Shown one piece after another: positions 489 through 64,000 of a DNA stretch of 64,000 nucleotides. The DNA is from Lytechinus pictus (taxonomy: Eukaryota). Position 1 is the stretch's first letter; each line of letters opens with the position of its first letter. The position numbers and the translations under genes were made by a program. The notes beneath the pieces are model-generated. The model ran no database searches. It was not told the DNA's origin and saw only the letters and a program-made list of their open reading frames with translations. The stretch covers positions 8,804,001-8,868,000 of the forward strand of contig NW_026974141.1 in NCBI RefSeq assembly GCF_037042905.1. The letters run 5' to 3'.

Positions 489-1799
489 ATTGGAACCCAA
501 ATCCATTATACCATTGTTGCAGTGTACAACTTACATTTTAATGATAGCCCTTATTATGCTCCATGACATCTCCTTTCAGTATGAAGTTTCTCTCATAATT
601 TCATTCATACAAATTTGAATAATTCATTATGTTCACACCTTCAGTTGTGAACTTTGCGACTTTTGCTTTATTAAATTGGTCACAAATTTAATCCTTTGCA
701 TTTTTAGTAACGAGGATGGCGATTGTGTCGCAATATTTGCAACTGCAATCATCAAATTGGCAACCCAAATTCTCATGCTTTATTCCAGTGACCAATAGGA
801 AGAGGATGCCGATTCTAAAGCTCAAAGGTTCACTACTATGATTGTCAAATTGGCAACTATAATTTGGAAATAAAAATCTGACCATAATCATCCTCTTAGT
901 TTTAAGGTCATTAAATTGGCAACCTACAGTATGATCAGGAGTGCAAAAGCAACATGAGCTGTTAACGAGCATTATTCAGGGCTATTTTAATTTCATTTGC
1001 TGTGTGATAAAGATTAATCATCAGGTGTTCCTTTCCGCATGCCCCAATTATCTCTTTACTCTTTTTATATTATATTACATTCCATAAAGATTTCATACGA
1101 AACTTTGCAAGCCTTTTGAAATAAAAATCTACATTTACTGCCTTATTCTCGCCCATCTTCCACATGAACTCGGCAAGATAGCGTTCTGCTGGTATAACAC
1201 CAAGCAGGTATAACAAATAAAATTACACTAGTCCAATACTGTTCAGATAACTTTCTTAATCTAGGATTTTCCTCAAACCGTTAATGTTTTTTATTAATAC
1301 CTTTTCATGTATTTTTACAGCAAGCTTTTCATCAGCGTAAACAGTCCCTTTAAATGCATAATTTTCAGCATGATTGGTGAGAAATTATGATGCACAGGTA
1401 CACACTCTAATTTTTCATGGATTCAAAATGATTCCAGATCGGCTCTGAATAGTGACCACTTGTACTGTGGATTTATATTATAAATCCTTTGAGATAAAAA
1501 GAAAAAATCTAGAGGATTCAAATTTAATCAAGGATCTGACTTGCCACTCTTGATAATATTCTTCAAAGTTTTCTTAAAGAGCCCACAGAGCAAAGAGGCC
1601 AAACTTTAAAAACACGAAAGAGATAGAGATTGAAAACAATAAAGGGAATCAACTATTCAGTTGTTAATTGCCAAATGTCAGTCCTATAAAACAGTGTCAA
1701 TTAAGGCATGAAAAAAATAGATTTACTTTACTTCTTAAAAACCCTGTTTCATGTGTAGAAAAAAAATGGGTTTATTTTCGATTGGTCTACACTGTTAGA

Positions 1800-2550
1800 A
1801 AAATTTCCGTTTTTTAACGGAAAAAGTCCGGCAGCAGAATTTCCGGACTTTTTTTTTTTTTCCGTAAATTTACAGAAAGTGGTAATTTATGGAAAAGTTC
1901 TGTAAAATATACAAGATTCCGTAAATTACAATTCTTGAAAATACGGACTTTATTTACGGAAACTTTACAGAAAATTTACATAAATTAACATGATTCCGTA
2001 TAAATAATTAACGGAAAAAAAAAATTTGTCCGGAAATTTTGCTGCCGGAATTTTTTTTTTTTGTCCGTAATTTTACGGATTCCTTTTCCGTAAAATTACC
2101 GTACTTTTACAGATTCCCATGAAAAATACGGATTTTATGTACGGAAATTTTACAGAAAATTTACGTGAATTAACATGATTCCGTATAAATAATTAACGGA
2201 AAAAAAAAATTTGTCCGGAAATTTTGCTGCCGGAATTTTTTTTTTTGTCCGTAATTTTACGGATTCCTTTTCCGTAAAATTACCGTACTTTTACAAATTC
2301 CCATGTAAAATATGGATATTATTTACGGAAATTTTACAGAAAATTTACGTGAATTAACATGATTCCGTATAAATAATTAACGGGAAAAAAAAATTTGTCC
2401 GGAAATTTTGCTGCCGGAATTTTTTTTTTAAATCCGTAATTTTACGGATTCCTTTTCCGTAAAATTACCGTACTTTTACAAAATTCCCATGTAAATTTAC
2501 ACATTTCCGTAAAAAAACAAGTTTACAGAATTCTTAAATTTTTTACAGAT
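1800..2550. repeat. Left subterminal tandem array (about 185-bp unit, about 3.5 copies)
   Basis: Near-identical units starting near 1937, 2122 and 2306. Confidence 0.9.
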
Positions 2551-4062
2551 ATTTTTTAATCAGTAGATACCTTACAATAGGAACGCTGATTTGCTATTTA
2601 AACATGTACTCCCAAACACATGGTAGATTGTATGAATGCATTCACTTAAGGCCTGAACAAACATTGTGTTGCCCTTTTCTGACCTGGACAAATCGGGCCA
2701 GCTTTTTTCAATTTCTTTTTTCATACTAAGCTTACTATTTCTAGAATAAAACATGGCAACAGTGATAGTGTCTCGCCCACTCATGAAAATAACCAGAAAT
2801 ATCGTGATTTGCGAGGGCACACAACATAATTGTATTGAAACTTCATTGTGAAATGACTGGGATGGAATAACACTTGTCATAAGAGCCTTGCACATAAACT
2901 TTAATGTTGACCTGTAAATTCAATTCAATTCAAAATGGTTTATTAAAAATCCTTTCTTTGCGGCAAAAGCCGAATTGCGAAAATTTACATTTCAAACAAA
3001 ATCATCAATAACAAGGTAAAAAAAACTTATAGTACTACGAACAAATTTCAATATAGACATATGTAACAAAGTATATCATAAATAAATTTAAATTGATACT
3101 CACTGATCAATAAAAAAAATTGAAAAATATTCAAAATACATGTAAATATGAGTGGATAGAGGAAATGAATTGGAAAGCAGAAAGGAATAGAAATAGTGGA
3201 AGAGAGAAGAGAGGCAGAGAAAGAGAGAGAGAAGAAATTGATGGTGGAAGGGAAACAGAGAGAAAAGGGCGAAGAAGCAATTCAATTCAATTCAATTCAT
3301 TTATTTTCTCTTTCAATCTTTTTACATTTACAATGATAGTTCAATATACATATTTACAAAATATAACATTTAAATCATTTTTTTATAATACAATAATACC
3401 ATGAAATCGAAAGGGAAGGAGACCAACTAAAAAGCAGAGCTTGTAGGGTGAAGGCCCCCTTTTATAAGTAAATTTTATGAATAAAAAATAAGATAAAATT
3501 AAGAAATAAACAATATATATCAAATGAATAAAAAATAAACAAATAAAAATAAAAATAAATAAATAATAATAAAAATAAATGATTCAGTATACACTGTATA
3601 CAGAAATCATAAAACGATTAAACATATATACAAAGAGAAATTAATAAACACATTTACATATTCAGTTCTGAATTACATTACTTTGGGAAAAAACGATAAT
3701 CTAATATGCTGCAATAATACATAGTTTGGCAATTTTTATGACTTCAATTCAAATATTAAGTTTACGACTAGATATCAGTGAATAATTGCTCATATGAAAG
3801 AAAAATATTTTGATTAACAAAGTAAAATGAAATGAAATGAAACTTGAGTTCGCCAACATAAAGAGAACTCAACATTAGAATTAGTATGTAATCTGCATTT
3901 TATAAAAAACAATCTTTTAATGATATCACATTTTAAGAGTCCAATGAATGATGAGTTCTTTAATTCTCAGCCATTCGTAGTTTGATATTATTGTACATGT
4001 AACGATAGGGGAAGATATATACAAAAAAAACTACTCCTTGTAATCAATTCTTTTAGAGTTAA

Positions 4063-4960: not shown

Positions 4961-5132
4961 TGCAGTGACACATCATGGAGTGAGAGCACCGTCGGGTTTG
5001 GTACATTTCTACAAAAACTTTGAACACTTTGACCTTACCATGTGACCTCCGACTGCAGCATAATATGCAGGTCGCCTAAGTACATCTACCATCCAAGTTT
5101 GGTTGAAAAGTGACTTACGGTTGCGGAGTTAG

Positions 5133-8100
5133 GTGTGCTGCCAGGCCATCTGGCAACGATGCTTGTTATTTTCCCAGCCTGATCACAAACAACCTAGCAG
5201 AAGACAAAAGAGGAATATCAAATCTTACATTCATAACTGTCTCTATATCGTTCTGGGCACTTAATTTTCAATTTTCTTTGGGACATCCAATGGGAGCACA
5301 CAACAATTGAGTTTTGCAAGTTTATCACATATTTGGAATGCAATTTTAACATGCATGCACATAAAAATTATTGGTGTGCTTTCCATGTTAGGTTGATTTA
5401 TCCAACAATCACCCCACCCTTCCACTGCTTCAATTGCTCAGTACTTGCACACACACAAAAAAAAATATATATGCTACAGAATTAACTACTCATTTTAAAA
5501 ATTGCCCAATCAAATACGAATCGAATAATTACTATAAATGAAACTGAAGTGATAGGAAATCCTAGGAAAGAAAATTAATGTCACATTCTTTTTTTTTGCC
5601 AAACTTTATACAAAATAGTACATTGTTCTAGTTATAGTAATTTAAGTGGCTTTCACATTTGCTTGTATTAGCAATTTCAATCATTTGATCACAATATATG
5701 TCGCACACAATCACAAAGGTTGCAAGCAGTCTCAGCACTAATTGTGAAAAGGGCCTAAGAAAGGGTATAATTAATCTAACCTGAACATTGATCGAGTATC
5801 TATTCTTCCTGTTGAGGAAGTATATTGCCTGATCCCCACCAGGGCTCCTGATGTAGACATGTGTCCCATCAATTGCACCTATCACTCCTGGAAATCTGCA
5901 GTACTGGAAGAACTGTCGCTGAGTTGCTTCAACTTCTTCTCTTGTCGAAGGAAACTTCATGTATTGCCTTTTCCTTCTTGCTATAGCTTCTGACACATCT
6001 TTGATGATTCGACACATTGATGACTGTGATATTGCTGCCTCATCACCATGCATCTTTTGAAATGATCCTGTAAAATCAAACAAACCATATGGTTGATAGG
6101 TCATTGTTTCGAGGTAATTTTAAAACATTTCATTACACATACAGATGATACTTCTGATGACAAAAAAAATTAAGCACATATTTCATAAGAATATTCATCT
6201 TTTACAAATATCAGACAATTTTCTGCAATTCATTTTAACAAGTGGAAGGCCTCTTGCAGTGTCGCCATCATACGCGATTCGATATAGCAGCAGTACTGAC
6301 TTCAAAAACAGCTATTGAATAATGTTTATTTTCTGCCCCGTGCTTTTGACTTTTTACCTTGATGTTTTTGCACATCTATTGATAAAAAATCAAAAAAATT
6401 GGTCAGTACCCCCAAAGTGTACCACTATATAACATGGCGCGCAACATACATGGTATTTCCCATACATAGTAGATGTCTATGTGTGATCATTCACATGATT
6501 ATAATTCAAATAAAAAAACATTTCTAAATATTCATTTGGAACTTATGATAATCATGTGGAAACCAACTCGCATATCTAATGAGCTGTGACCTTTGACCTG
6601 CGGACTCCGAATTCGAACTGAGCCTGTATTTTGGTGTCCTATACCTACACACCAAACTTTTTTTATCCATTACATATTTTTTTACTTATTGCGCGGAAAC
6701 CAAGTGGGGGGTGGACGGACAGGGGCAATGCATGACCATCCAGGCGCCATTTTGTAAATTTCTAGTCCATTTGCATACTATTCCTAATCCCATCCTTACT
6801 CTCTTATCCTGCATGCTACACACTTCTAACAAATTGCTGTAGATTGTTTAAGAGTTGCTCTTCATATGAAAATATGACTTGCCCTTGAAAATGCCGTCTT
6901 CATGCCCTAAATTCAAATCCGAAATAGTCTACATTAAAAAAAATTCATATTTATTGAAATGTAAAGTAGGAAAATCATAAAATGGCCGTAACTTCCTTGT
7001 TTTTATTTATTTTGGTCTGATTTGGGAACATGCTTCCTTATTCATCTGTTTTTACGCATCAGTGACCATTACCTTTAGAAATAGCGCCCTCTATTGCAAA
7101 GTGGAATAATAGTAAAATGGCCATCACTTACTTGTTTTCATTTATTTCAGTTTCATATTTTCAGGGTTGACTTACGATAGTCCAAATTCAATTGTTTTTT
7201 TTTTTCATTTTACACATCAATGACCATTATCTTAAAAAATAGCGCCCTCTATTGCAAACTAAAGAAATATTATAATGGCCATGACGATAAGTTCCTAGTT
7301 TTCATTTATTTCGGTCTCATATTTTCAGGGTATGCTTATGGCATCATCCCTCATAATCCATGTTTTTTTACGCACATCAGTGACCATTACCTTAAAGAAA
7401 TAGCGCTCTCTATTAAAAAGTTGGAAAACAGTAAAATGGCCATCACTTCCTTGTTTCCATTTATCTTGGTATCACTTTTTTAGGGTTTGCTAATGGCATC
7501 ATCCCTCATATGCAAAATGTTTTTTTTACGCATCAGTGACCATTGCCTATAAAAATAGCGCCCTCTTAATATTTTGAAAATGTATATCCTCAGGAGTTTT
7601 CTCTTTATCTCCTTCTGTTTCTTGCCCTCCATAAAATCACAGGCGTCAATGCATGCACATTGTTCTGATACAATTGCAGCTCTAGTTTTTTGTGTGTATG
7701 TTCATCTCGAGTTGTTATCTATGTGCCAAATTTCATAGCTTTTCATCGCAACACAGCCAAGTTTCGGGGGGGGGGGGGGGGTGGGGGTGATCTGCCAATT
7801 TAGAGTTAATGACGAATTTATAACTCTAACCTGACATAACAGTTCTAACAGCAGAAACAGCAGAGCTTCACTCCTGCTGTGGTAGTTTTGGAATTTTTAA
7901 GCATGCAATTCATAGGTACTTGACTGTTTGCTTAAATGATACTCTTACTTATGTGATCCCTCTCTGATTTCTAGATATTGTCATCATCATCAACTTTGTC
8001 TGGAGTCCTAAAATTAATAGAAACAACCTCAGTCAAATAGATTTAACAGTGCCCAGAAACATTCAATAATCATTTAATTCAATTACTCACCCACTGCATG

Positions 8101-53300: not shown

Positions 53301-56300
53301 AAACTCACAAAAATGCTTCTTATTTGTTTACTGATTTTGATTTTTTTTTGTTCCATCTGAGAGCCTCATGAAGTTCACCAATTTCAATTTTGTTTCCTCA
53401 ATTATGTCACCAATATAATTCACTACAGTGTCAACTGGGCTAAATTAAAAAATTGTGTGAAAATTTGTTGCGAGATGCCGGATAAGCTCCACATCATTGA
53501 TGTGCTGGTTCAATAAGCTTGCGCGTTGCATATCATATTCGCGTCGTCAGTCGAGTGCAACACAAAGTCATACTTAAAACATTGTAAAACACTCCCCTAT
53601 GGTACATGTATGTTTCACAAAGAGCCAAGTTTGAATACTATTGGTCATTTTGCTCCCCTTCAGAGGATTTATCTTGTAATATTGACGGTTTTAAATGTTT
53701 TTTGTTTGTTTACAGGCACTCGTCATTGCTTTTACCTCTGAGTTCATCCCCCGTCAAGTTTATAAATATTACTACAGTGGCGAAGAAAACAGTCTTGTTG
53801 GCTACAACAATTGGTCATTTTGCTCCTCTTCAGAGGATTTATCTTGTAATATTGACGGTTTTAAATGCTTTTTTTTTTTTTTTACAGGCACTCGTCATTG
53901 CTTTTACCTCTGAGTTCATCCCCCGTCAAGTTTATAAATATTACTATGGTGGCAAAGAAAACAGTCTTGTTGGCTACAACAACTGGTCACTTTCCTATTT
54001 CCAGACCAAGGATTTCCAGGAAGATTCGAAGCCTTCTGATCCGTCTTACCCAAGGGTTGAACCAGATGACCCGAACTATGGTCTTAACGTCTCTATGTGC
54101 AGGTAAAAGATGAAGCTGACTCTACAAAAAAGATGAGTTTGGTATAAAGCATTGTCTTGAGAAGAATTTCTAGAAACAGAGTACTGGTAGTCCGTCTGAT
54201 CGATTCTAATGTTGAAAATCGCTTTAAAAAAAAAATTAAAAAAGAAGAAAAATACACTGTTAACCAAACTTATCTTTTAAGGTTTCTTCATTGAAATGAT
54301 GCCATGATATGAAGTAATAATTTTTTTGATAGGTGAAAGTTTGAACAATATCAGACAAACAATAAGAAAGTTATGAATTTTAACAGTTGTAAATATTGGT
54401 AATCATTATACTCATGGAGACTTTAAATTGGGCGCATAGCAGATGTCATAGTGATGTAAGGCAAGGACTCCTCGTCCATTGTACTCCAATACATAAAATG
54501 GCAAAAAAAATTCTTCAAAGGTTTTACTTTAAATAATATTTATCTTTAATGAGGATATAAAACAACATACTTCCATAGTTATATTTAGATAACTGCCCCA
54601 GGGGCCCCCTGATAATTAAGTACACGGGCTATGGGAAAGTTGTCCTTGCCCCTTGTCATAATCTACTCACCCTGTTGCCAATTTGAAATCGACATAGTCT
54701 AAGGGATCTTAAATTTAAAGCAGCGGTAACTTTCTTATTGCTCATCCGATTCCCTTCAGACCTTAACCATTTGGTTTTATTATTTAATTTTTCTCCTTTC
54801 CACACAACATTTTATGACCAAGGCTGGACTCACCTTTCATTCCTCATTTAAAGGGGAATCCAGCTTTGGCCATAAAATGTTGTGTTGGGAAGGAGTAAAA
54901 TAAATCAAACAAAATGGCGAAAGTCTGAAAGAAATCGGACAAGCAATAAGAAAGTTATACATGTAGCTGCTTTAAAATTGAGATCACTAATACTACGTAG
55001 ATTTCAAATTGGCAACTGGGTAAGTAAATTATGACAAAGGGCAAGGACAACTTTCCCATAGGCCATGTACTTTATTATCAGGGATTTGTGGTTTTCTCCC
55101 AAGTACCAATTCCCCTGGGGCAGTAATCTACATTTGTAAATATAACCCAGGTACATGTAGTATATTGTTTTATGTCCTCATGAAAGAAAAATATAATTTG
55201 AAATAAAACTTTTGGGAAAAATGACATTTTAGCCATAATATGTATTGGAGTACATGGTAGTCCTTGCCTTACATCACTAGGACATCCCATATGCGGCCAA
55301 TTTGAAGTCTCCATGGGGATAGTGATTACCAATATTTACAACTTTTAAAGATTCATAACTTTCTTGTTGTTTGTCCAATATTGTTCAAACTTTCACTTAT
55401 CAACTTGTCTGATTTTTCTTTTCCTTATAAAAACAAGTTTTTATTTGGGTTGGATTCCCCTTTAAGTGGAGTCGGTCATTTTCATTTTGATTTGGATTCT
55501 TTCAGATACCGTGGCTACTACGATGAGAATTACGAGGTTACTTTGGACTACTGGCTTATAATCGCGATCAAGCTGGCCTTCATCTTGCTCTATGAGGTAA
55601 GTATTGTACCCAAATATCAAATAGTAGCTTCCCATTTAATGTACCGTCACTGTGATAAAGAGACTGTTCGATTTCTTTTTAGAGAGGGTGATGCTGTGAG
55701 ATAATTTTGTTTTCCTTTTTTGTTTAAATCGCAAATAGAGCCATCAGGCTTGTACAGCACCTCAAAACTTGAAATTGATCTTGCAAGTGAAAGTAATTTC
55801 TCTTAATTCTTTGGTATTATTAGTCATAAGGGTACATAGGGTTTATTGTACAACAGGGCTCCATAACTGAAAGGGATGCTTCAGGCTGAAAATAATATGA
55901 TTTGAATAAATAAAGCAAAATCAGGCAAACAAAAGACTGAAAATTTGATCAAAATCGTACAAGGAATAACAAAGATATGGTATTTTAAAGATATATATAT
56001 GCATTATTCCAGTAAAATAATTCTAGGCATGTCGTCATGCCTACTCAATGAGCAATCTGATGATGTCATATCCCCACTTGTTCTTTTGTATTTTATTATA
56101 TGAAATTAGGTTTATTCAATTTTTTCCTCCGAGAATTGAAAATATTGGAACGACAACTGATTCAGTACATTTGATATTATTGCTGCAACTTATTTCATAA
56201 GAGGAGAGACATAACATTCACACATGTATAAAAAAATCAAACAAATATGATTTCATGTAATAAGATAAGAAAAGGAAAGTGGGGATTTGACATCATCAGC

Positions 56301-59300
56301 CCACCTAATGAATATTCATGCCGACGGCATGTAACCGTTTTCACAATATATTGCCGAACTTTAACTTTCAATAACTTCGCTATTTGTAATCAGATTTTGA
56401 TGGAATTTTCTGCATTTTGCTCTATTTATTTACATATGAATATTTCCAGCAGAATATCCCTTGAAAGCTTAGTGATTAGTGAAGGCAAATATTTATAAAT
56501 GATCATACACCCCCATCTTATTGTTATGATTTTGAGTAATTTGTTTTTGCATTTTCTTTCAATTGGTTGAAGTAAGGTCAGCAGATATAAATGATATGGA
56601 TTAAAATGTCTTGCTGAGAAATACATGGAAATGCGATTTATTACTTAGTTGAGGCATAGGTTTATCATACGGTGACACAACATTTGCTCCGGTCTTAATA
56701 TTTCAGAGTGCATAGGGTTAGAGTTATGATTGTATTAGAGTATTTGGTTCAGAATAATGTAAAGATAAGGATTAGGGTTTAATTAGTTTTGGAGGTTAAG
56801 ATTTTATGTATGGCTTAACATGCAGATTTTCCATCTGAGCAAGCGTCGCTAGAGCAAATGTCATGGAACCATATCATATACATGTACATGTATTAGGCTA
56901 TTTCATGATAATTGCTGATATTGGTGTGGTGTCTTTGGGGGTTTTTATGGGCTACTTACTGTGGTGTTTGGATGCTAATACAAGGGATGTAGACAAGGTG
57001 GTATTTTGGAGTCACAAGGTCGCGGGACAGAGCCTTTATCCATAGACTTTGTACATGTAACTCGGGCCAAGGCCAAGGTACAGGTTGGCTAAATGTGGTC
57101 TCGAGGCTGGTTTGGACTACATCTCTCGCTAATACCTATGCGGAGCTACTCCTTAGAGTGATTTTGTCTCTTTACTTGGAAGTCTTTTGAAAGTGTGATG
57201 CGGTAGTAGGAGGAACACTTACCAGTAGTAAACATCCACCATTTGCCCCTCCTGCTTTTAAGGTTTCCCATATGTACAGTATGTTTGTTCTCATTGCCTT
57301 TGAATAAAGAGTCTTGAAAAATCACCCACTGAATAATTATGTAGATATACTTGGTAATAACTTGGCAAAATATATGAAAATACTAATAAATATTTATATG
57401 AATGTATCAAAGGTGAAGGGTTAAAAAGTAAGAAGAGAATACAATTCTTCTTATAGCTTGAGCCAGGAAACTGGTGTTCCCCAGGGATCAATCATAGGTG
57501 CACTTATATTTTTTGAAAGATCATGTGCTATAATTTTATAGAAAAATAGGTTTTGTTTTACTCACAATAATTGTCAGGTCACATCTACTAAAATGCTACT
57601 CATTTTCATCAAACACTCACAGCTCACATTGTTGCCTCTCAGAGTTATTTGCTCATTGTATCTTGTTGATAATGTGTGCTCATATTCCAAACACATGCCA
57701 ATTCAATACAAAAGCAAGTGCACCTGCCATAATTCATGTTCCTGTATATGTGTTAATGCTCCAATACATTAAACTTTGTCCTTTTTTGTTGCAATTGTCA
57801 TGTCTAAATTCATGGACATTTTAAAACTTGTCCTTTTTCAAATCAGATGTATTCATCATGTTTCAAATGTCATTGTTTGTATATTTAATTCTGCATGAAG
57901 TTATTATTATTATTATTATTATTTTTATTTTATTCGGCAATTAAAAATACATAAATTGTAGTACAATACAAATCACACAAACAATAGGACATAGGTGACA
58001 TAGTACAAACGACCTGGAATAGAGATGAAGGGGCTGCCTGGGTTTGGAAAAGGTAAACTGAATTACCATGGCCCACAGGCCTTCCTTCCCACACCCCTTA
58101 ACCTTAACTACATGTATGCATAATACGCATTTATAAAGCATAAGCTGTTTCCATTTTCTTGTACAAATTATGCCAAGGAGACTTCTGATATGGTTTAAAA
58201 TAAGAGGAAATGTGATGAATTTTGTTGTGGAAAAATTATTGAATTCTTAAGACACATATGCCTGTTGCAAGATGCTAATAAATAGTTTGTGTGGAAAAAA
58301 GAATTTACTGAAATTAATTTTCTTTAGTTCCTTTGTAGATTCCGTAGTAGATTCCTTTATACCTTTATTTATTATAATAAGTAATGATGGTAATAAACAT
58401 AAATTTGTGTAGCATTTCAAACAATAAAGCATTACAACGGTCCATGTACTTGTAATCGGAGCATTTATCACCAATCTTCTTGCTGCGTATTATCATCCAT
58501 AACTTTGCCTATGGGCTGTATAGTGTAGTTTGCAATACATGTTTAACTCTTGAGTCTAAATGATGATAGATGTTGAATCTGAAAATAACAAACTTGCTAA
58601 ATGTAGGTCCTTGTGTTTGTATATATGTAAAACTTCTAGTCCTTATCATTATATCTCTTACTTCTGGTACTAATAATAACACTTGTCTGAAGTCTTCTTT
58701 CGAAGAATGATTCCTTGTCAACTGAAGACCATATCATAATACAACACTAATTTTTATTAATGATAACTAATCTCCTTGTCATTCATGTTATATCCTGTTT
58801 AATATCTTACCAAAATGATGACTGCAGAATTTTCCTTTTTTTTTTGCATTTCAGAGTTTTTGATACCATAATTTGGTTGAGCATGCATACCTCCATATGA
58901 TCCCAAATTTGGTGGGAATTAGTCCATGGAAATCCAAGATATGACCTCATGAATACATAATCAGCCCATTAATGTATTATTGGCCTTGTTCTAAATGTTA
59001 TGAACCATTAATTAACTTTATTGCCCAGGATAATTACGTATTCATGAGGTCATATTTTGGGGCACTCATGAGCCAATTCCCACAAAATCCTGGGTGTGGA
59101 GGTATTTCGTAGAGGTGTTGTTGCTTAGTGGATAAGTCTCCAGACTTTAAACCACAAGGTCCTAGGTTCCAATCCCACCACAGCGCTCCCGTCCTTTGGC
59201 AAGGCGTTTACCTATATTTGCCACTCTTCACCCATGTGTAGTAAATGGGTACCCGGTAAGAAGGAATTCCTTGAATGCTCGAGCGCCCGATCAGGGTAGC

Positions 59301-62300
59301 CGTGCTAAAGCCGGGGTAATAGTATGCAGCATTTAGGAACATTTGTGTTAAGCGCTATATAATTGTTGCATATTGTTATTATTATTTCACAATGCGTTAC
59401 CAAAATATGGTATAAAAAAATTCTGAAATGCAAAAACTGAATATTGATGATGTCACACTTTGGTTCTCCATACTAACCTTCGTTATTGCATGGAATTATT
59501 ATCAACTGTAAGATATTCAAATTCATTAACTATCCAGCTTACTAATTTTCATACCTATCAGATTATTATCATGAAATTTACAGACTTCTAATCCATTTTT
59601 TAATTAAAATGGAAAAAAGGGGAAAAAAATCAAGTTATATATAAAAGAGAAGACATTTCAAACTAGGATGCCATTAGCTGTGTCATGTCCTTTGTATTTA
59701 AAAGAATGAACAAATTTGCTATGATAGTCCAACATTTCTCATCTTATGTAAAAGAAAAGACATTTTGTTGCATTCCATTTTGTTGTATCATGAAATAGAA
59801 ATGTCAGTTGTTCTTTCTAGATCTTTTTTCTTGTTTTCCAATTTATTAAATCTCTTTCTCTTTCAATTAAAAATAAGTCTTTTGTGTGCCTTTCCCATTC
59901 AATGTTTGTTATGTTTCCCCTTTTATTACCTGTGTGCTCGCTCATTAACTTTTTGTGTTTTCTTTTCTCACTTTCATTGTCTCTCTTCCTACATGTATCT
60001 CTCTTTCACTCTGTTTCGACAGCTCTCACATTATTAAACTTTTGTTGTTGTTGATTTCTTTCACTTTTTGATCTACCTTTTTAATGTCTTTTCCCCCTAT
60101 TTCTTTCCCTTTTTAGCCTCCTGCTCCTGTCTTTTCTGTTCTCTTTTCTCAAATTTCTCTTAAAATTTGTCACCATCCCGATATATGTTTGTTCCTGTTA
60201 TCTATCTATCTACCTACCTACCTATCTCTTGCTCTCTCGCTCTACTTTTTTTTTTCTCTTTTACAGCTTGTACACACTCTTTCTTTTACTGTTCATGTGT
60301 ACTATGAACGAATGTTGTCAGTCTATTTCATTATTTATTTTATTCCCACCCCCTCTTCACCTTCTCTCTCTCTCTCTTTCTCTATATCTGCCTATCATTT
60401 CGATTCTGTCCTAGAGATTGTTCCCAGTACTCTCTTTCAGTGCTAAACTATACCTGTAACCTTTCTCTATTTTCCACTCTGTAAACTCCTCCTGAACGTA
60501 ACAGACCTCTTCTTTTGTCTATGTCAGCCTCTTTCATTATCTGTCTTGGTCCTACCTCTCCCTCTCTTTTTCTCTCGCTGTCTCTCTGTTTCCTCTTTGT
60601 ATCTTTACTTGCCTTATCATTTTGGTCCTGTCCTGGAGGACATACCCTCTCTCATTGTACCTATATCCTTTCTATATTTCCACTCTGTAAACTCCTCCCG
60701 AATGTGACACACCTCTTCTTTTCTCAGTCTCTTTCATTATTTGCCTTTCTCCTGCTTCTCCCTCTCTTCTTTCTCTCTCGCTGTCTCTCTGTTTCCTCTT
60801 TGTATCTTTACTTGCCTTATCATTTTGGTCCTGTCCTGGAGGACATACCCTCTCTCATTGTACCTATATCCTTTCTATATTTCCACTCTGTTAACTCCTC
60901 CCGAACGTGACACACCTCTTCTTTTCTCAGTCTCTTTCATTATTTGCCTTTCTTCTGCTTCTCCCTCTCTTCTTTCTCTCTCGCTGTCTCTCTGTTTCCT
61001 CTTTGTATCTATACCTGCCTTATCATTTTGGACCTGTCCTGGAGGACATGCATGTACCCTCTCTCAGTGTACCTATATCCTTTCTCTATTTTCACTCTGT
61101 AAACTCTTCCCGAATGTGACAAACCTCTTTTTTTGTCAGTCCCTTTCATTATATGCCTTGCTCCTGCTTCTCCCTCCCCTTTTGCTCTCTCTGTCTCTCT
61201 ATCTTTCTCTTCTAATCTTTACCTGCCTCTTACTTCGATTCTGTCCAAGAGATTGTACACGCTCTCATTCTGTGTGAATTCGTATAACCATAATATACCC
61301 TCTCTTCACCTTCTGTAGCATCTCGTCTTATTCATCAAGTTCTTTGTGGCCTACATCATTCCCGACATGCCCGATTTCGTCAAGAACCAGATCAAGCGCG
61401 AGAACTACCTAGCCCAGCAGGCCTTGCGCACGGCCTTGGTAGAGAACCGGGGCAAGAGCAAGAAGATGGTCCCGCCCGGCGGACCTGAAGACTCCTCCGG
61501 CGCTTCCGGCCCCGTCGAGCCCTAAACCGGCTTCCCGTCGCCACGACTACGCATCATCCATCAGCGATCTTCACTATCATCGCGTCTGCATCCACTCATT
61601 TCAAACCAGAGCATATCTTTCTAAATCCGACTTGCCTCGTACACGACAGTGGCCTCTGTGGAGCTATTCACTTCCTCATAGAACATATTTCGTACTGTAT
61701 TTTATATATAGCCCCCTCTATAGACCAAAACTGTCAGTAGTGATGGTTGTTCATATTTTTCTGTCATAGCTGTTTTCTGTCATTCTTGTATATATCAATA
61801 CCTGACTTTGTATTGTACCATATTCTGTATCATTTAAAAAAAGTGTTAAAGCTTTTACATATATATCATTTACTTTTATACTTTCCGTACCCTATTTCTT
61901 TGAATGCTGTGTCTCGATTCAGAATTAGAACAAGAATCCATGTTCAGTGTTATTTCTGTTCTCATTCTTCATAAGAAAGTTTGATTCTTGAAATATGCAT
62001 GTGACTTTCCTAACAGGGTTTCACCTTCTAAATCTTGTTATTAACAAGTGTTCTCGAATTGACGTTTCTACATTTAATTGATCAAAACATGTGTTATACT
62101 AGCATTTCATAAGAGGCTTGACTTTTGAATAATGGAAATATTGATATATGTTGTATCATGTAATTATGCTCTATGCACTTAAGAACGAAAGGAGAGAAAA
62201 ATCATCATCAGTTGCTGCTTCACCTATTTTGTCATGTGGTAATGTGTTTGCAATCATCTTTACCCCTATTTACCCCTTATTTCACTCTCACTTGGCATAA

Positions 62301-63774
62301 ATTCTTTCATGAAATCTTTTTATCTATTGCCAATTTGAAGAATGCAGTGATCTCGCACTCTAAATTAATGTTAGTAGCATATTGTCAATTTTGAACCTGC
62401 CTTTGCTGTAATACATACAAACTTGGCTGAAGAATAATATCGTGGCACAAATCGTTGCATTTTAAGTTTTAAAAAGAAGTAAAATATATATGCCGAGGAT
62501 TGTGAATATTCATCATTTTTTACAATGTCCATATTTAAATAATTTATTATGTTCAGAACTATGCAACAAACTGCCATCATGGTTATACCAGTCCGTGTCA
62601 TTGGGTTCATAAAAAAAAGCAATTGCACGAATACAATGTGATCCATCGCATACCCTAAAATGAAGAATGAAAATCATCCTTAATTCTCAAATTTGTTTAT
62701 TGGGTTTAAGTGTTACTTTCTTGGACTGTGGACGAAATGAACCGTCGTAAACTGGCTCTTTTTTTACATACATGTATACCTCCAAGCTACATTATGACAA
62801 GAAATGTCTAGTTGTGTGTAGCTTTGTACATTACCCTGTTATGAAATATCAGATATTGGTGATGTTGATCTTGTCCCCAGTTGTCTTGAATGAATGATCC
62901 TGTGTTTACATGAATTTCATTCAAGTTCTCTGTGAATAAGTTGTCTACATATCATTCGCTCTGTCTATATAAAATCATCACTCAGTCTTGTTGTTAGCTC
63001 ATTCGTCATACATGTTGCTTTCAAAATTTTCTTTGAAAAATAGCATTGCCTGTACGTAAAACAACCCCACAATTGACCTACCGTATGCATGGAATTATCT
63101 GAAATATGTATGGTTGTGTATATTGTAATCAGTGTCACCTGTTTATATTATAACAAAAAAAATAAGTCTATACCTTTCTCTCTTTTTTTGCATCCTCAAT
63201 ATTTCAAGTATGAGTGTGCTAGCTTAGAGGCATGCAGGGTTGAATGTATGTGGTTTTGTTGTATTGAGTATCAGCAGTCTGAGTTTGATTTGGTTGTCAG
63301 TTTTCAGGAATTTAACTTACCGGTATTTGATCCTCACTCCACTCATGCCTGGCTTATGTATATGATTTGAATATTTGCATCATTAGGATTTGAGATTATT
63401 TTCATTTCCAATTTGATTTGAAGTTTGTTTTCCAAGTCATCTCATTACTTTATGATTTATTTCTTTTCCTTTCCCATCCCTCGCGCATGAACCCGCTTCC
63501 TCATTACCTGACATTGCATTACCCCCGAAACCCATTTCTGCATCCCGACCAATTGCTTCTGATTGCCGTGGCAACCGCATCCCAGCATGTCATCATCATC
63601 GTGAAGATGTTCACTGCTTACGTCATCCCGGATATGCCCGATAACGTCAAGAACCAGATAAAGAGGGAGAACTTCCTCGCCCAGCAGGCGCTACATGAGC
63701 TTACCTTGAGCAAGGGTAAGGCGAAGTCGGCAGAGGCCGCCATACCCCCTCACGAGGCAGACGCAATGGTATAA
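14575..63774 (+). CDS. ANO: Anoctamin/TMEM16 family gene (ANO1-7-like), multi-exon, 5'-partial; about 850 aa from the exons below
   Basis: Phase-compatible GT-AG exons give one frame with family motifs [117 protein letters not shown]. Paralogue identity not resolved. Confidence 0.96.
17220..17246 (+). CDS. Candidate 27-nt cassette microexon GPEPNPEDP
   Basis: atgcag acceptor, gtgagt donor, phase 0/0 matching flanking exons, 436-nt AG-free zone upstream. Confidence 0.7.
19572..19670 (+). CDS. Anoctamin exon [16 protein letters not shown]...KMPIE
   Basis: cgcag/gtattt, 99 nt. Confidence 0.93.
20051..20654. mobile_element. TTAA-TSD MITE (Kolobok-like)
   Basis: ttaa|aggtcaagtccac...gtggacttgtcct|ttaa with long imperfect TIRs. 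Confidence 0.85.
21300..22130. repeat. (GAT/GGT)n low-complexity microsatellite with N blocks
   Basis: Direct reading; source of the spurious M/V/I/T-rich ORFs. Confidence 0.95.
22133..22507 (+). mobile_element. TTAA-type element, near-identical to 45026-45404
   Basis: gattggttaacattggtttgac...aaacaatacct|ttaa in both copies. Confidence 0.85.
22628..22764 (+). CDS. Anoctamin exon ENNMEEP...[11 protein letters not shown]
   Basis: catag/gtgagt, 137 nt. Confidence 0.9.
24769..24823 (+). CDS. Anoctamin exon [18 protein letters not shown]
   Basis: cacag/gtaaga, 55 nt, phase 2/0. Confidence 0.9.
25605..25659 (+). CDS. Anoctamin exon [18 protein letters not shown](G)
   Basis: atcag/gtgagt, 55 nt. 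Confidence 0.9.
25737..26014 (+). mobile_element. tRNA-derived SINE
   Basis: A-box tggcacagtgg, B-box gagttcaaatccc, (ATT)n tail; copies at 49216 and 59111. Confidence 0.88.
26213..26325 (+). CDS. Anoctamin exon [20 protein letters not shown]...NDRH
   Basis: tgtag/gtgagt, 113 nt; partial duplicate acceptor at 26135. Confidence 0.92.
27541..27579 (-). ncRNA. Minimal hammerhead ribozyme remnant (Penelope-like element type), core mutated
   Basis: Minus strand gcct-CCGACGA-agattctgctaggatc-GAAA-gctt-aggc: stem I, stem II, palindromic AAGCTT; CUGANGA reads CCGACGA. Confidence 0.7.
30564..30730. mobile_element. Palindromic MITE (tttcatgaaa..gattggctgag family; relatives near 23185-23310, 37207-37354, 37739-37864, 63848-63998)
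   Basis: ggggtgtttcatgaaagttgtcagcgctgac / gtcagtgctgacaacttcatgaaacggtcccc. Confidence 0.8.
30759..30985. mobile_element. Tc1/mariner-like MITE
   Basis: TA-flanked TIRs ...aaagttagtgaacccc / gggttcactaactttt...ctg|ta. Confidence 0.6.
31088..31152 (+). CDS. Anoctamin exon [22 protein letters not shown]
   Basis: cctag/gtttgt, 65 nt. Confidence 0.93.
31757..31880 (+). mobile_element. RTE-clade LINE reverse transcriptase fragment
   Basis: Translates [23 protein letters not shown]. Confidence 0.8.
31990..32124 (+). CDS. Anoctamin exon [18 protein letters not shown]... (TM1)
   Basis: tacag/gtaagt, 135 nt. Confidence 0.95.
32835..32931 (+). CDS. Anoctamin exon NEICEG...[22 protein letters not shown]
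   Basis: actag/gtgagt, 97 nt. Confidence 0.95.
33657..33717 (+). CDS. Anoctamin exon [20 protein letters not shown] (TM2)
   Basis: cacag/gtgagt, 61 nt. Confidence 0.95.
34355..34437 (+). CDS. Anoctamin exon [28 protein letters not shown]
   Basis: tgcag/gtatgc, 83 nt. Confidence 0.95.
34627..34739. mobile_element. 113-bp hAT-type MITE, near-perfect hairpin
   Basis: cagtggcggaccgtgacccgg TIR; 8-bp TSD atattaat on both sides. Confidence 0.9.
34743..35039 (-). mobile_element. tRNA-derived SINE, related family; partial copies near 22786-22945 and 32620-32805
   Basis: Reverse-strand A/B boxes (tggcccagtgg, ggttcaaatccc), (ATT)n tail. Confidence 0.85.
35413..35475 (+). CDS. Anoctamin exon [21 protein letters not shown]
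   Basis: tttag/gtaagt, 63 nt, phase 0/0. Confidence 0.93.
37508..37582 (+). CDS. Alternative exon A of the pre-TM3/TM3 cluster: [25 protein letters not shown]
   Basis: tgtag/gtgagg, 75 nt, phase 0/0, FPR motif shared with B-D. Confidence 0.85.
38961..39035 (+). CDS. Alternative exon B: [25 protein letters not shown]
   Basis: ctcag/gtgaga, 75 nt, phase 0/0. Confidence 0.9.
39230..39304 (+). CDS. Alternative exon C: [25 protein letters not shown]
   Basis: tgtag/gtgaga, 75 nt, phase 0/0. Confidence 0.9.
40949..41023 (+). CDS. Alternative exon D: [25 protein letters not shown]
   Basis: tgtag/gtaggg, 75 nt, phase 0/0. Confidence 0.88.
44235..44532. mobile_element. Harbinger/Tourist-like MITE (relatives near 32956-33242, 49793-50108, 50655-50942)
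   Basis: tat|ggcccgtattctgaagtc...gactttagaatacgggcc|tat. Confidence 0.8.
45026..45404 (+). mobile_element. TTAA-TSD element nested in an older repeat (related to 27400-28090)
   Basis: ttaa on both sides; highly similar to 22133-22507. Confidence 0.85.
46671..46835 (+). CDS. Anoctamin exon [15 protein letters not shown]...[10 protein letters not shown] (TM3-TM4)
   Basis: tctag/gtgagt, 165 nt. Confidence 0.95.
46860..47132 (-). mobile_element. Two tandem copies of a short LINE RT fragment
   Basis: Minus strand [13 protein letters not shown] and [13 protein letters not shown]. Confidence 0.7.
47478..47514 (+). CDS. Anoctamin exon [12 protein letters not shown]
   Basis: tacag/gtaagt, 37 nt. 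Confidence 0.93.
47891..48002 (+). CDS. Anoctamin exon [38 protein letters not shown] (TM5)
   Basis: cacag/gtaggt, 112 nt. Confidence 0.95.
48189..48246 (+). CDS. Anoctamin exon [19 protein letters not shown]
   Basis: aacag/gtgagg, 58 nt. Confidence 0.93.
48710..49056. mobile_element. MITE with internal ttcgtc/ttggtc repeats; intact reference for the split copy at 1768-13655
   Basis: Inverted arms aattgccaactcgtctact / gtagacgaattggcaatt. Confidence 0.75.
49216..49491 (+). mobile_element. tRNA-derived SINE (same family)
   Basis: tggctcagtgg, ggttcaaatc, (ATT)n tail. Confidence 0.88.
49559..49656 (+). CDS. Anoctamin exon [33 protein letters not shown] (TM6)
   Basis: cgtag/gtaagt, 98 nt. 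Confidence 0.95.
50296..50435 (+). CDS. Anoctamin exon VVLNFWRSR...GLFKEYLEM
   Basis: caaag (AAG) acceptor/gtacgt, 140 nt; Ca-binding EYLE motif. Confidence 0.92.
51234..51386 (+). CDS. Anoctamin exon [35 protein letters not shown]...AQDI (TM7-TM8)
   Basis: ttcag/gtaaga, 153 nt. Confidence 0.96.
52390..52442 (+). CDS. Anoctamin exon [18 protein letters not shown] (TM9)
   Basis: ttcag/gtaagt, 53 nt. Confidence 0.94.
53888..54102 (+). CDS. Anoctamin exon [16 protein letters not shown]...NVSMCR
   Basis: tacag/gtaaaa, 215 nt; partial duplicate starts at 53716. Confidence 0.93.
54330..55461. mobile_element. Head-to-head pair of Kolobok-like MITEs (54330-54837 inverted; 54852-55461 complete with TTAA TSD)
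   Basis: Reverse complement of 54330-54837 aligns along 54852-55400. Confidence 0.85.
55506..55596 (+). CDS. Anoctamin exon [30 protein letters not shown] (TM10 start)
   Basis: ttcag/gtaagt, 91 nt, ends phase 0. Confidence 0.95.
55870..56462. mobile_element. Degenerate Kolobok-like MITE related to 20051-20654
   Basis: Shared ctgaaaatttgatcaaaatcg / gattttgatggaatttt arms. Confidence 0.65.
59111..59385 (+). mobile_element. tRNA-derived SINE (same family)
   Basis: Collinear with the 25737 and 49216 copies. Confidence 0.88.
60330..61270. repeat. Pyrimidine-rich tandem repeat, about 205-bp unit, about 4.5 copies
   Basis: Units starting near 60460, 60667, 60870 and 61079. Confidence 0.9.
61319..61525 (+). 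CDS. Alternative C-terminal exon 1: [38 protein letters not shown]...GPVEP*
   Basis: tgtag acceptor, phase 0, TAA at 61523-61525. Confidence 0.9.
   Translation, partial: HLVLFIKFFVAYIIPDMPDFVKNQIKRENYLAQQALRTALVENRGKSKKMVPPGGPEDSSGASGPVEP
63586..63774 (+). CDS. Alternative C-terminal exon 2: [38 protein letters not shown]...EADAMV*
   Basis: cccag acceptor, phase 0, TAA at 63772-63774; ORF 63418..63774. Confidence 0.88.
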   Translation, partial: HVIIIVKMFTAYVIPDMPDNVKNQIKRENFLAQQALHELTLSKGKAKSAEAAIPPHEADAMV

Positions 63775-64000
63775 TGAGAGGTTTGGAGGATTTGGGAGGG
63801 ACAGTGACAGCTCACAGTGGGACCACACCCATTCTCTCATCAACTCTTGGTTCCTGTTTCTTGAAGACTTGTTACAATGACAAATGACCAATTTCTGTTA
63901 CAAGTTTTCTCTAAGCCAATCAAATTGAATGATTTCAGTAGCTTGAAACTGTTATTGCAAGTTTGTTTTTATAACATGTTTTATTAAACAGGCACCCAAA

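Follow-up and report, generated by a model that had tools for sequence, protein, structure and literature searches.

Kondrashov and Koonin in 2001 and Letunic, Copley and Bork in 2002 reportedly described alternative exons that originate from tandem exon duplication. In the tropomyosin genes, homologous alternative C-terminal exons (9a–9d) provide partner-changing ends and are usually described with 3′ ends of their own. Alternative splicing also occurs in the anoctamin (TMEM16) family itself, where the well-known vertebrate segments, such as segments a–d of TMEM16A/ANO1, are N-terminal or loop cassettes. The literature on sea-urchin anoctamin splicing and on TMEM16 alternative C-terminal exons was searched, and no description of the urchin event presented here was found.

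The window, a stretch of 64,000 nucleotides of Lytechinus pictus DNA, carries an anoctamin-4-like (TMEM16) gene with two terminal coding exons, exon 1 and exon 2, which give rise to type-1 and type-2 proteins, respectively. The two qualify as tandem-duplicated alternative exons in that they are adjacent, homologous, of equal phase and served by a common donor; as in that class, they also encode the same structural segment and are used one per protein. However, tandem-duplicated internal exons differ from the urchin pair, which is terminal and whose exclusivity would need no special mechanism; a further difference is that the second urchin copy appears to persist untranslated in type-1 mRNA. 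The gene resembles tropomyosin exons 9a–9d in that duplicated last coding exons supply alternative C-terminal ends, but in the urchin the evidence points to a single composite terminal exon whose two acceptors lie 2.27 kb from each other. With TMEM16A/ANO1 segments a–d it has in common the protein family and the alteration of cytosolic regulatory parts by splicing, whereas the well-known vertebrate segments do not represent a duplicated exon that covers helix 10 and the tail.

Our main reading, to which we assign a probability of roughly 80%, is that the last coding exon of the anoctamin-4-like gene was tandem-duplicated in the sea-urchin lineage and that both copies were kept as alternative ends, the distal copy lying within the 3′-untranslated region (UTR) of type-1 mRNA. 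The event is of a familiar, ordinary alternative-splicing kind and is already present in automatic annotations. The twist, unsurprising to splicing specialists, is that the second copy would be carried as silent 3′UTR in the type-1 mRNA. The gene offers a clean, conserved case of a duplicated terminal exon yielding an alternative protein end without a mutual-exclusion mechanism.

The exons in the window are 100% identical to RefSeq XP_063971237.1 (P0117, anoctamin-4-like) wherever a tblastn match is confined to one exon, and locus L005 of assembly GCA_037042905.1 equals the window letter for letter over 55001–64000. The constitutive upstream exon (55506–55596, plus strand) encodes the outer half of helix 10 and ends in ..LLYE followed by gtaagt, so that the donor GAG/GTAAGT is common to both terminal exons. 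On the same strand, the coding segment of exon 1 (61319–61525) comprises 68 amino acids and a TAA stop, and that of exon 2 (63586–63774) comprises 62 amino acids and TAA, followed by TGA. Each encodes the inner half of helix 10, a conserved C-terminal helix, a tail and a stop; both are in phase 0, lie directly behind an AG acceptor and continue the frame of the upstream exon. The original prediction of two phase-0 exons that both continue exon 55506–55596 was thus borne out by frames, acceptors and translations, as was its claim of a common core with synonymous differences followed by unrelated tails. In the first 37 codons, the two exons differ at 10 codons synonymously and at 11 non-synonymously, and beyond QQAL the tails are unrelated. 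Exactly two copies were found in the window by tblastn. Each exon peptide alone matches positions 433–460 of 460 of the Pfam Anoctamin model (PF04547; the last 28 positions) at 17–19 bits against a cut-off of 28, and both align to mouse TMEM16F from residue 844 (E = 5e-6 and 2e-5); because both match the end of the Pfam family and TMEM16F from the same residue, their similarity is not due to chance. Against PF04547, full-length orthologous isoforms P0038 and P0040 reach 522 and 518 bits, respectively; against PF16178 (Anoct_dimer) they reach 245 bits.

On the same scaffold (JAZDCF010000020.1) there is another copy of the entire gene. The window's copy lies at 8.82–8.87 Mb on the plus strand, and the sister copy (L006) is found at 7.31–7.39 Mb on the minus strand, that is, inverted and 1.43 Mb away. 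The two are about 95.5% identical, introns included, and both terminal exons recur in the sister copy at a spacing of 2,248 nt; this state is due either to a recent inverted duplication or to a retained haplotig. RefSeq places a single model on the window's copy, the type-1 model P0117, which terminates at exon 1, and isoforms numbered up to X30 on the sister copy. All type-2 RefSeq models of L. pictus sit on the latter, where the gene annotation extends as far as the stop of exon 2 and where tail 2 is paired with three TM3 variants. The original estimate of at least 16 isoforms can be set beside these numbers, which are those of models rather than of long reads. Elsewhere in the window, upstream of those anoctamin exons that make up the P0117 model, a called gene of 126 amino acids on the minus strand (about 5086–6053; 1427–2394 in L005) contains a DDE_Tnp_4 (Harbinger-type transposase) domain.

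RNA was mapped to positions 61200–64000 from two contig sets (X1 and X22) and two raw total-RNA runs (X19 and X20, sampled at about 6%), so that joints from 55596 are visible only as loose ends in this region. Reads were mapped at 95% identity, and some may derive from the 95.5% identical sister copy. At both acceptors the loose-end consensus is ..CATCTTGCTCTATG, the 3′ end of exon 55506–55596. The junction 55596–61319 appears as loose ends before 61317 in 13 raw reads (five from X19 and eight from X20) and in one X1 contig, with loose letters ..GATCAAGCTGGCCTTCATCTTGCTCTATG that equal the end of the same exon; in addition, an X22 contig at the exon-1 acceptor carries 169 spliced upstream letters. 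The junction 55596–63586 comes from one X1 contig with the overhang ATCTTGCTCTATG before 63584, which amounts to 13 letters (15 with the shared AG) in a single assembled contig of L. pictus; this contig has zero differences from the window. It was not listed in the roughly 6% samples of X19 and X20, and a word-index search with the exon-2 peptide returned one short Logan open reading frame and no spliced L. pictus fragment of 34–108 amino acids. The three read polymorphisms in exon 2 (63732, 63738 and 63747) are all synonymous. Both junctions are therefore present in RNA, the second from one contig, and RefSeq has models with either tail for three urchin species, which upholds the proposal that a single TMEM16 gene possesses duplicated alternative C-terminal exons.

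In the proposed mechanism, the donor at 55596 would be joined to one of two acceptors, the proximal (61319) or, 2,267 nt further on, the distal (63586), within what would effectively be one long terminal exon with two acceptors. The proximal copy provides a stop codon, with no donor and no evident polyadenylation signal, so that type-1 mRNAs would continue through the distal copy as untranslated 3′UTR; in type-2 mRNAs, the proximal copy would be removed along with the intron. Exclusivity at the protein level would follow from the stop codon and the lack of a donor in the proximal copy. The inter-exon stretch (61526–63585, plus strand) would accordingly serve as 3′UTR in type-1 mRNAs and as part of the intron upon use of the distal acceptor.

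This arrangement, in which exon 2 was expected to be a distal acceptor inside the 3′UTR of exon 1, has to be weighed against classical alternative last exons with polyadenylation sites of their own, where the type-1 end would lie at a non-canonical site near 61770–61860 and the inter-exon RNA would be precursor or retained intron. Separate ends of this kind would explain why raw-read depth in X19 and X20 drops sharply past about 61764 and is near zero at 61860–62230, and why one X1 contig stops at 61766, although the gap in depth could reflect either a proximal non-canonical polyadenylation site or haplotypes that mismatch at the 95% cut. They do not fit the absence of AATAAA, already noted in the original prediction, and likewise of ATTAAA from the exon-1 stop to 63983. 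Moreover, the 2.06 kb between the exons have an mRNA-like, contig-tiled depth of 67–210 in X1 and 19–60 in X22, whereas the true intron just before exon 1 (61200–61293) has a depth of 0 in all four runs, from which it follows that DNA or precursor RNA is negligible in these libraries. One X22 contig is continuous over 61317–62361, starting at the spliced junction, and the X1 and X22 contigs tile the whole gap, without proving a single molecule that spans exon 1 to exon 2. A further X1 contig (62867–63613, depth 210) passes the exon-2 acceptor unspliced; compared with a depth of 431 in exon 2, this suggests that unspliced and spliced forms are roughly equal there in X1. A comparable link is provided by L002, a spliced mRNA Logan contig of another urchin (SRR6173504) that maps exon by exon to the window and includes 55506–55596 as a spliced exon. 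Its 454 amino acids score 370 bits against PF04547 and align to mouse TMEM16F 460–890 (E = 2e-108). The reading frame closes with the type-1 tail at 1365, and the contig then continues through 2.2 kb to the exon-2 homologue at 3555–3758, whose AG is intact, such that spliced type-1 coding sequence and exon 2 are joined in a single contig. Taken together, the RNA depth, the unspliced X1 contig and the read-through in L002 support the distal acceptor within the exon-1 3′UTR, and separate last exons are considered unlikely.

Two other explanations concern exon 2 itself, which might be an unused relic (pseudo-exon) that merely lies within the 3′UTR. In X22 the exon-2 region is indeed one unspliced contig with a depth equal to that of the 3′UTR, and the RefSeq model of the window's copy ends at exon 1. 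A relic, however, would hardly combine a dN/dS of 0.07–0.10 with a reading frame, acceptor AG and stop that are kept in four urchin lineages while the flanks diverge, nor would it account for the spliced overhang in X1 and the type-2 RefSeq isoforms in three species; we regard this explanation as very improbable. It is scarcely credible, too, that exon 2 is part of a different, paralogous gene or stems from an error of assembly, an outcome that the original prediction had named as fatal to itself. The presence of two near-identical gene copies on one scaffold of the assembly might raise that suspicion, but exon 1 is followed by exon 2 in both copies (2.25–2.27 kb apart) and, in the same order, in L002, and exon 2 codes for the C-terminal end only and is spliced to the donor of the anoctamin gene.

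Beyond exon 2, the 3′UTR (63775–64000, plus strand) is probably common to both mRNA forms. Contigs past exon 2 extend to 63886 and 63938, and no polyadenylation site was found; candidate signals are ATTAAA at 63983 and 64319, and the first AATAAA lies at 66086 in L005. This region contains a 15-nt motif, GACCRCACCCATTCT, at 63821–63835, 47 nt past the exon-2 stop, which also occurs twice in L001 (567 and 694) and in L006 and is absent from L002. From about 63914, a repeat element occupies the remaining positions to 64000, where contig depth jumps to 1,400–3,800 with many divergent loose ends and reads of both strands. Before exon 2, unspliced RNA of the same strand at 62870–63585 matches the depth of exon 1 in some runs (up to 6x in X19; the X1 contig at 210), even though raw reads leave 61860–62230 almost empty. 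It is possible that this RNA represents molecules with a long 3′UTR, haplotype mismatch, or a separate transcript start.

Both tails are found in RefSeq models of L. pictus, Strongylocentrotus purpuratus and Diadema antillarum. In L. pictus, five type-1 models (the P0090 group) and six type-2 models (the P0108 group) were examined. In S. purpuratus, isoform X4 (P0089) is of type 2, and the other isoforms and the cloned TMEM16 cDNAs are of type 1. Three of the models examined in D. antillarum are of type 1, ending in ..GAEP, and 11 are of type 2, ending in ..LEDV; the one model of D. setosum is of type 1. Exon 1 has conserved counterparts in S. purpuratus, L. variegatus, Diadema and the L002 species; L001 and P0001 represent the exon-2 region in S. 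purpuratus or a near relative; and Lytechinus, Strongylocentrotus, Diadema and the L002 species all possess both types. The comparison of related species, as had been called for, thus confirmed that both exons are conserved across sea urchins. Identity is 75–87% in the coding part vs. 58–69% in the flanks, dN/dS for exon 1 is 0.05–0.08, close to the range given above for exon 2, and purifying selection is acting on both copies. The type-1 tail conserves TALVExRGKSxKLVPPGGP, and the type-2 tail conserves ALH(E/Q)xTL and the terminal Val.

With regard to the age of the duplication, the starfish models (Acanthaster, Patiria and Asterias) have one tail type, and the second copy is absent at the Acanthaster locus L004, including about 11 kb downstream. 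Since both tails are present in Diadema and camarodonts and only one in starfish, the duplication predates the split between Diadema and camarodonts. It looks echinoid-wide and, with starfish as the outgroup compared, may be echinoid-specific. In Asterias rubens and A. amurensis, isoforms P0037, P0053 and P0056 differ at the extreme end of the single tail (..STSSWVKWDGNN.. vs. ..STSGQP), suggesting that starfish have a smaller alternative 3′ event of their own.

At the protein level, the exon boundary was placed by homology to solved TMEM16 structures. The hydrophobic stretch straddles the exon junction, with H..AYIIPD behind it; what the alternative exons contribute is thus helix 10's inner half, followed by the conserved first cytosolic helix and by a tail of 26–32 residues. 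Type-1 and type-2 proteins therefore have the outer half of helix 10 in common; its inner half and the first cytosolic helix differ conservatively, whereas the 26–32-residue tails differ completely. In the structure of mTMEM16A, what is left of the C-terminus is probably unstructured (PMC5470873). The expectation that the isoforms would differ in dimerisation was not supported: because the part that contributes to the dimer interface is encoded by the constitutive upstream exon, altered dimerisation is not a likely consequence. Different partners, sorting or regulation, set by the tails, would be a more likely effect.

It had also been suggested that the terminal -AMV is a PDZ ligand. The last three residues were compared with the PDZ class motifs [ST]-x-hydrophobic, hydrophobic-x-hydrophobic and [DE]-x-hydrophobic. 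Type-2 proteins end in AMV, GMV, EMV or EDV, so that the terminal Val is kept in all four urchin lineages, but position −2 varies (A, G, E and E). A PDZ ligand at the type-2 C-terminus is possible but unproven, since conservation is confined to the final residue.

A TMEM16 protein has been detected in the sperm flagella of Arbacia, and the TMEM16 cDNAs that were cloned as a 122-kDa protein belong to the S. purpuratus ortholog (PMC7024835). On the strength of these two observations, the tails may matter for localisation or regulation in sperm as opposed to other cells. A more far-reaching and rather doubtful proposal is that of a regulated distal switch, whereby a distant branch point would let some tissues or stages skip the strong proximal acceptor. 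One terminal exon would then give either a type-1 protein, with the silent second copy in a long 3′UTR, or a type-2 protein with the conserved final Val, and the tails would steer the channel or scramblase towards distinct compartments or partners, such as the sperm flagellum versus somatic membranes. The event shows that echinoid anoctamin-4-like proteins carry two conserved cytosolic tails; its general importance is modest.

The pyrimidine tract is better at the proximal acceptor and weaker at the distal one. The distal acceptor is preceded by a pyrimidine-rich zone of 147 nt that is free of AG (63437–63583, plus strand), in agreement with the approximate length originally predicted, vs. an AG-free span of 65 nt before exon 1; the window contains 16 AG-free gaps of at least 147 nt. 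The long AG-free zone is conserved as a feature, its homologue being at least 282 nt in length in L001 and 106 nt in L002. The zone is probably the span from a distant branch point to the acceptor AG, and the choice of acceptor may be regulated through this long zone before the weaker distal site. Of the strong internal donor that, it was suggested, could extend exon 2, the sequence is present (GT at 63716–63717, in AAGG/GTAAGG), but its use is not borne out by RNA, in which no joint or loose end occurs at this site and contigs traverse the GT. Use of this donor was rejected for want of both RNA support and conservation, its GT context being weaker in L001 and missing from L002.

A search for selector arms (inverted repeats) between the intron 55597–61318 and the region before exon 2 gave only short, AT-rich matches of chance quality, and an Rfam scan of 61000–64000 gave nothing credible (best match 24 bits, cut-off 75). 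Within the same intron, a pyrimidine-rich unit of 203 nt is repeated 3.8 times in tandem at 60451–61228 of the window, stopping 90 nt short of the exon-1 acceptor; in the sister copy there appears to be about one such unit.
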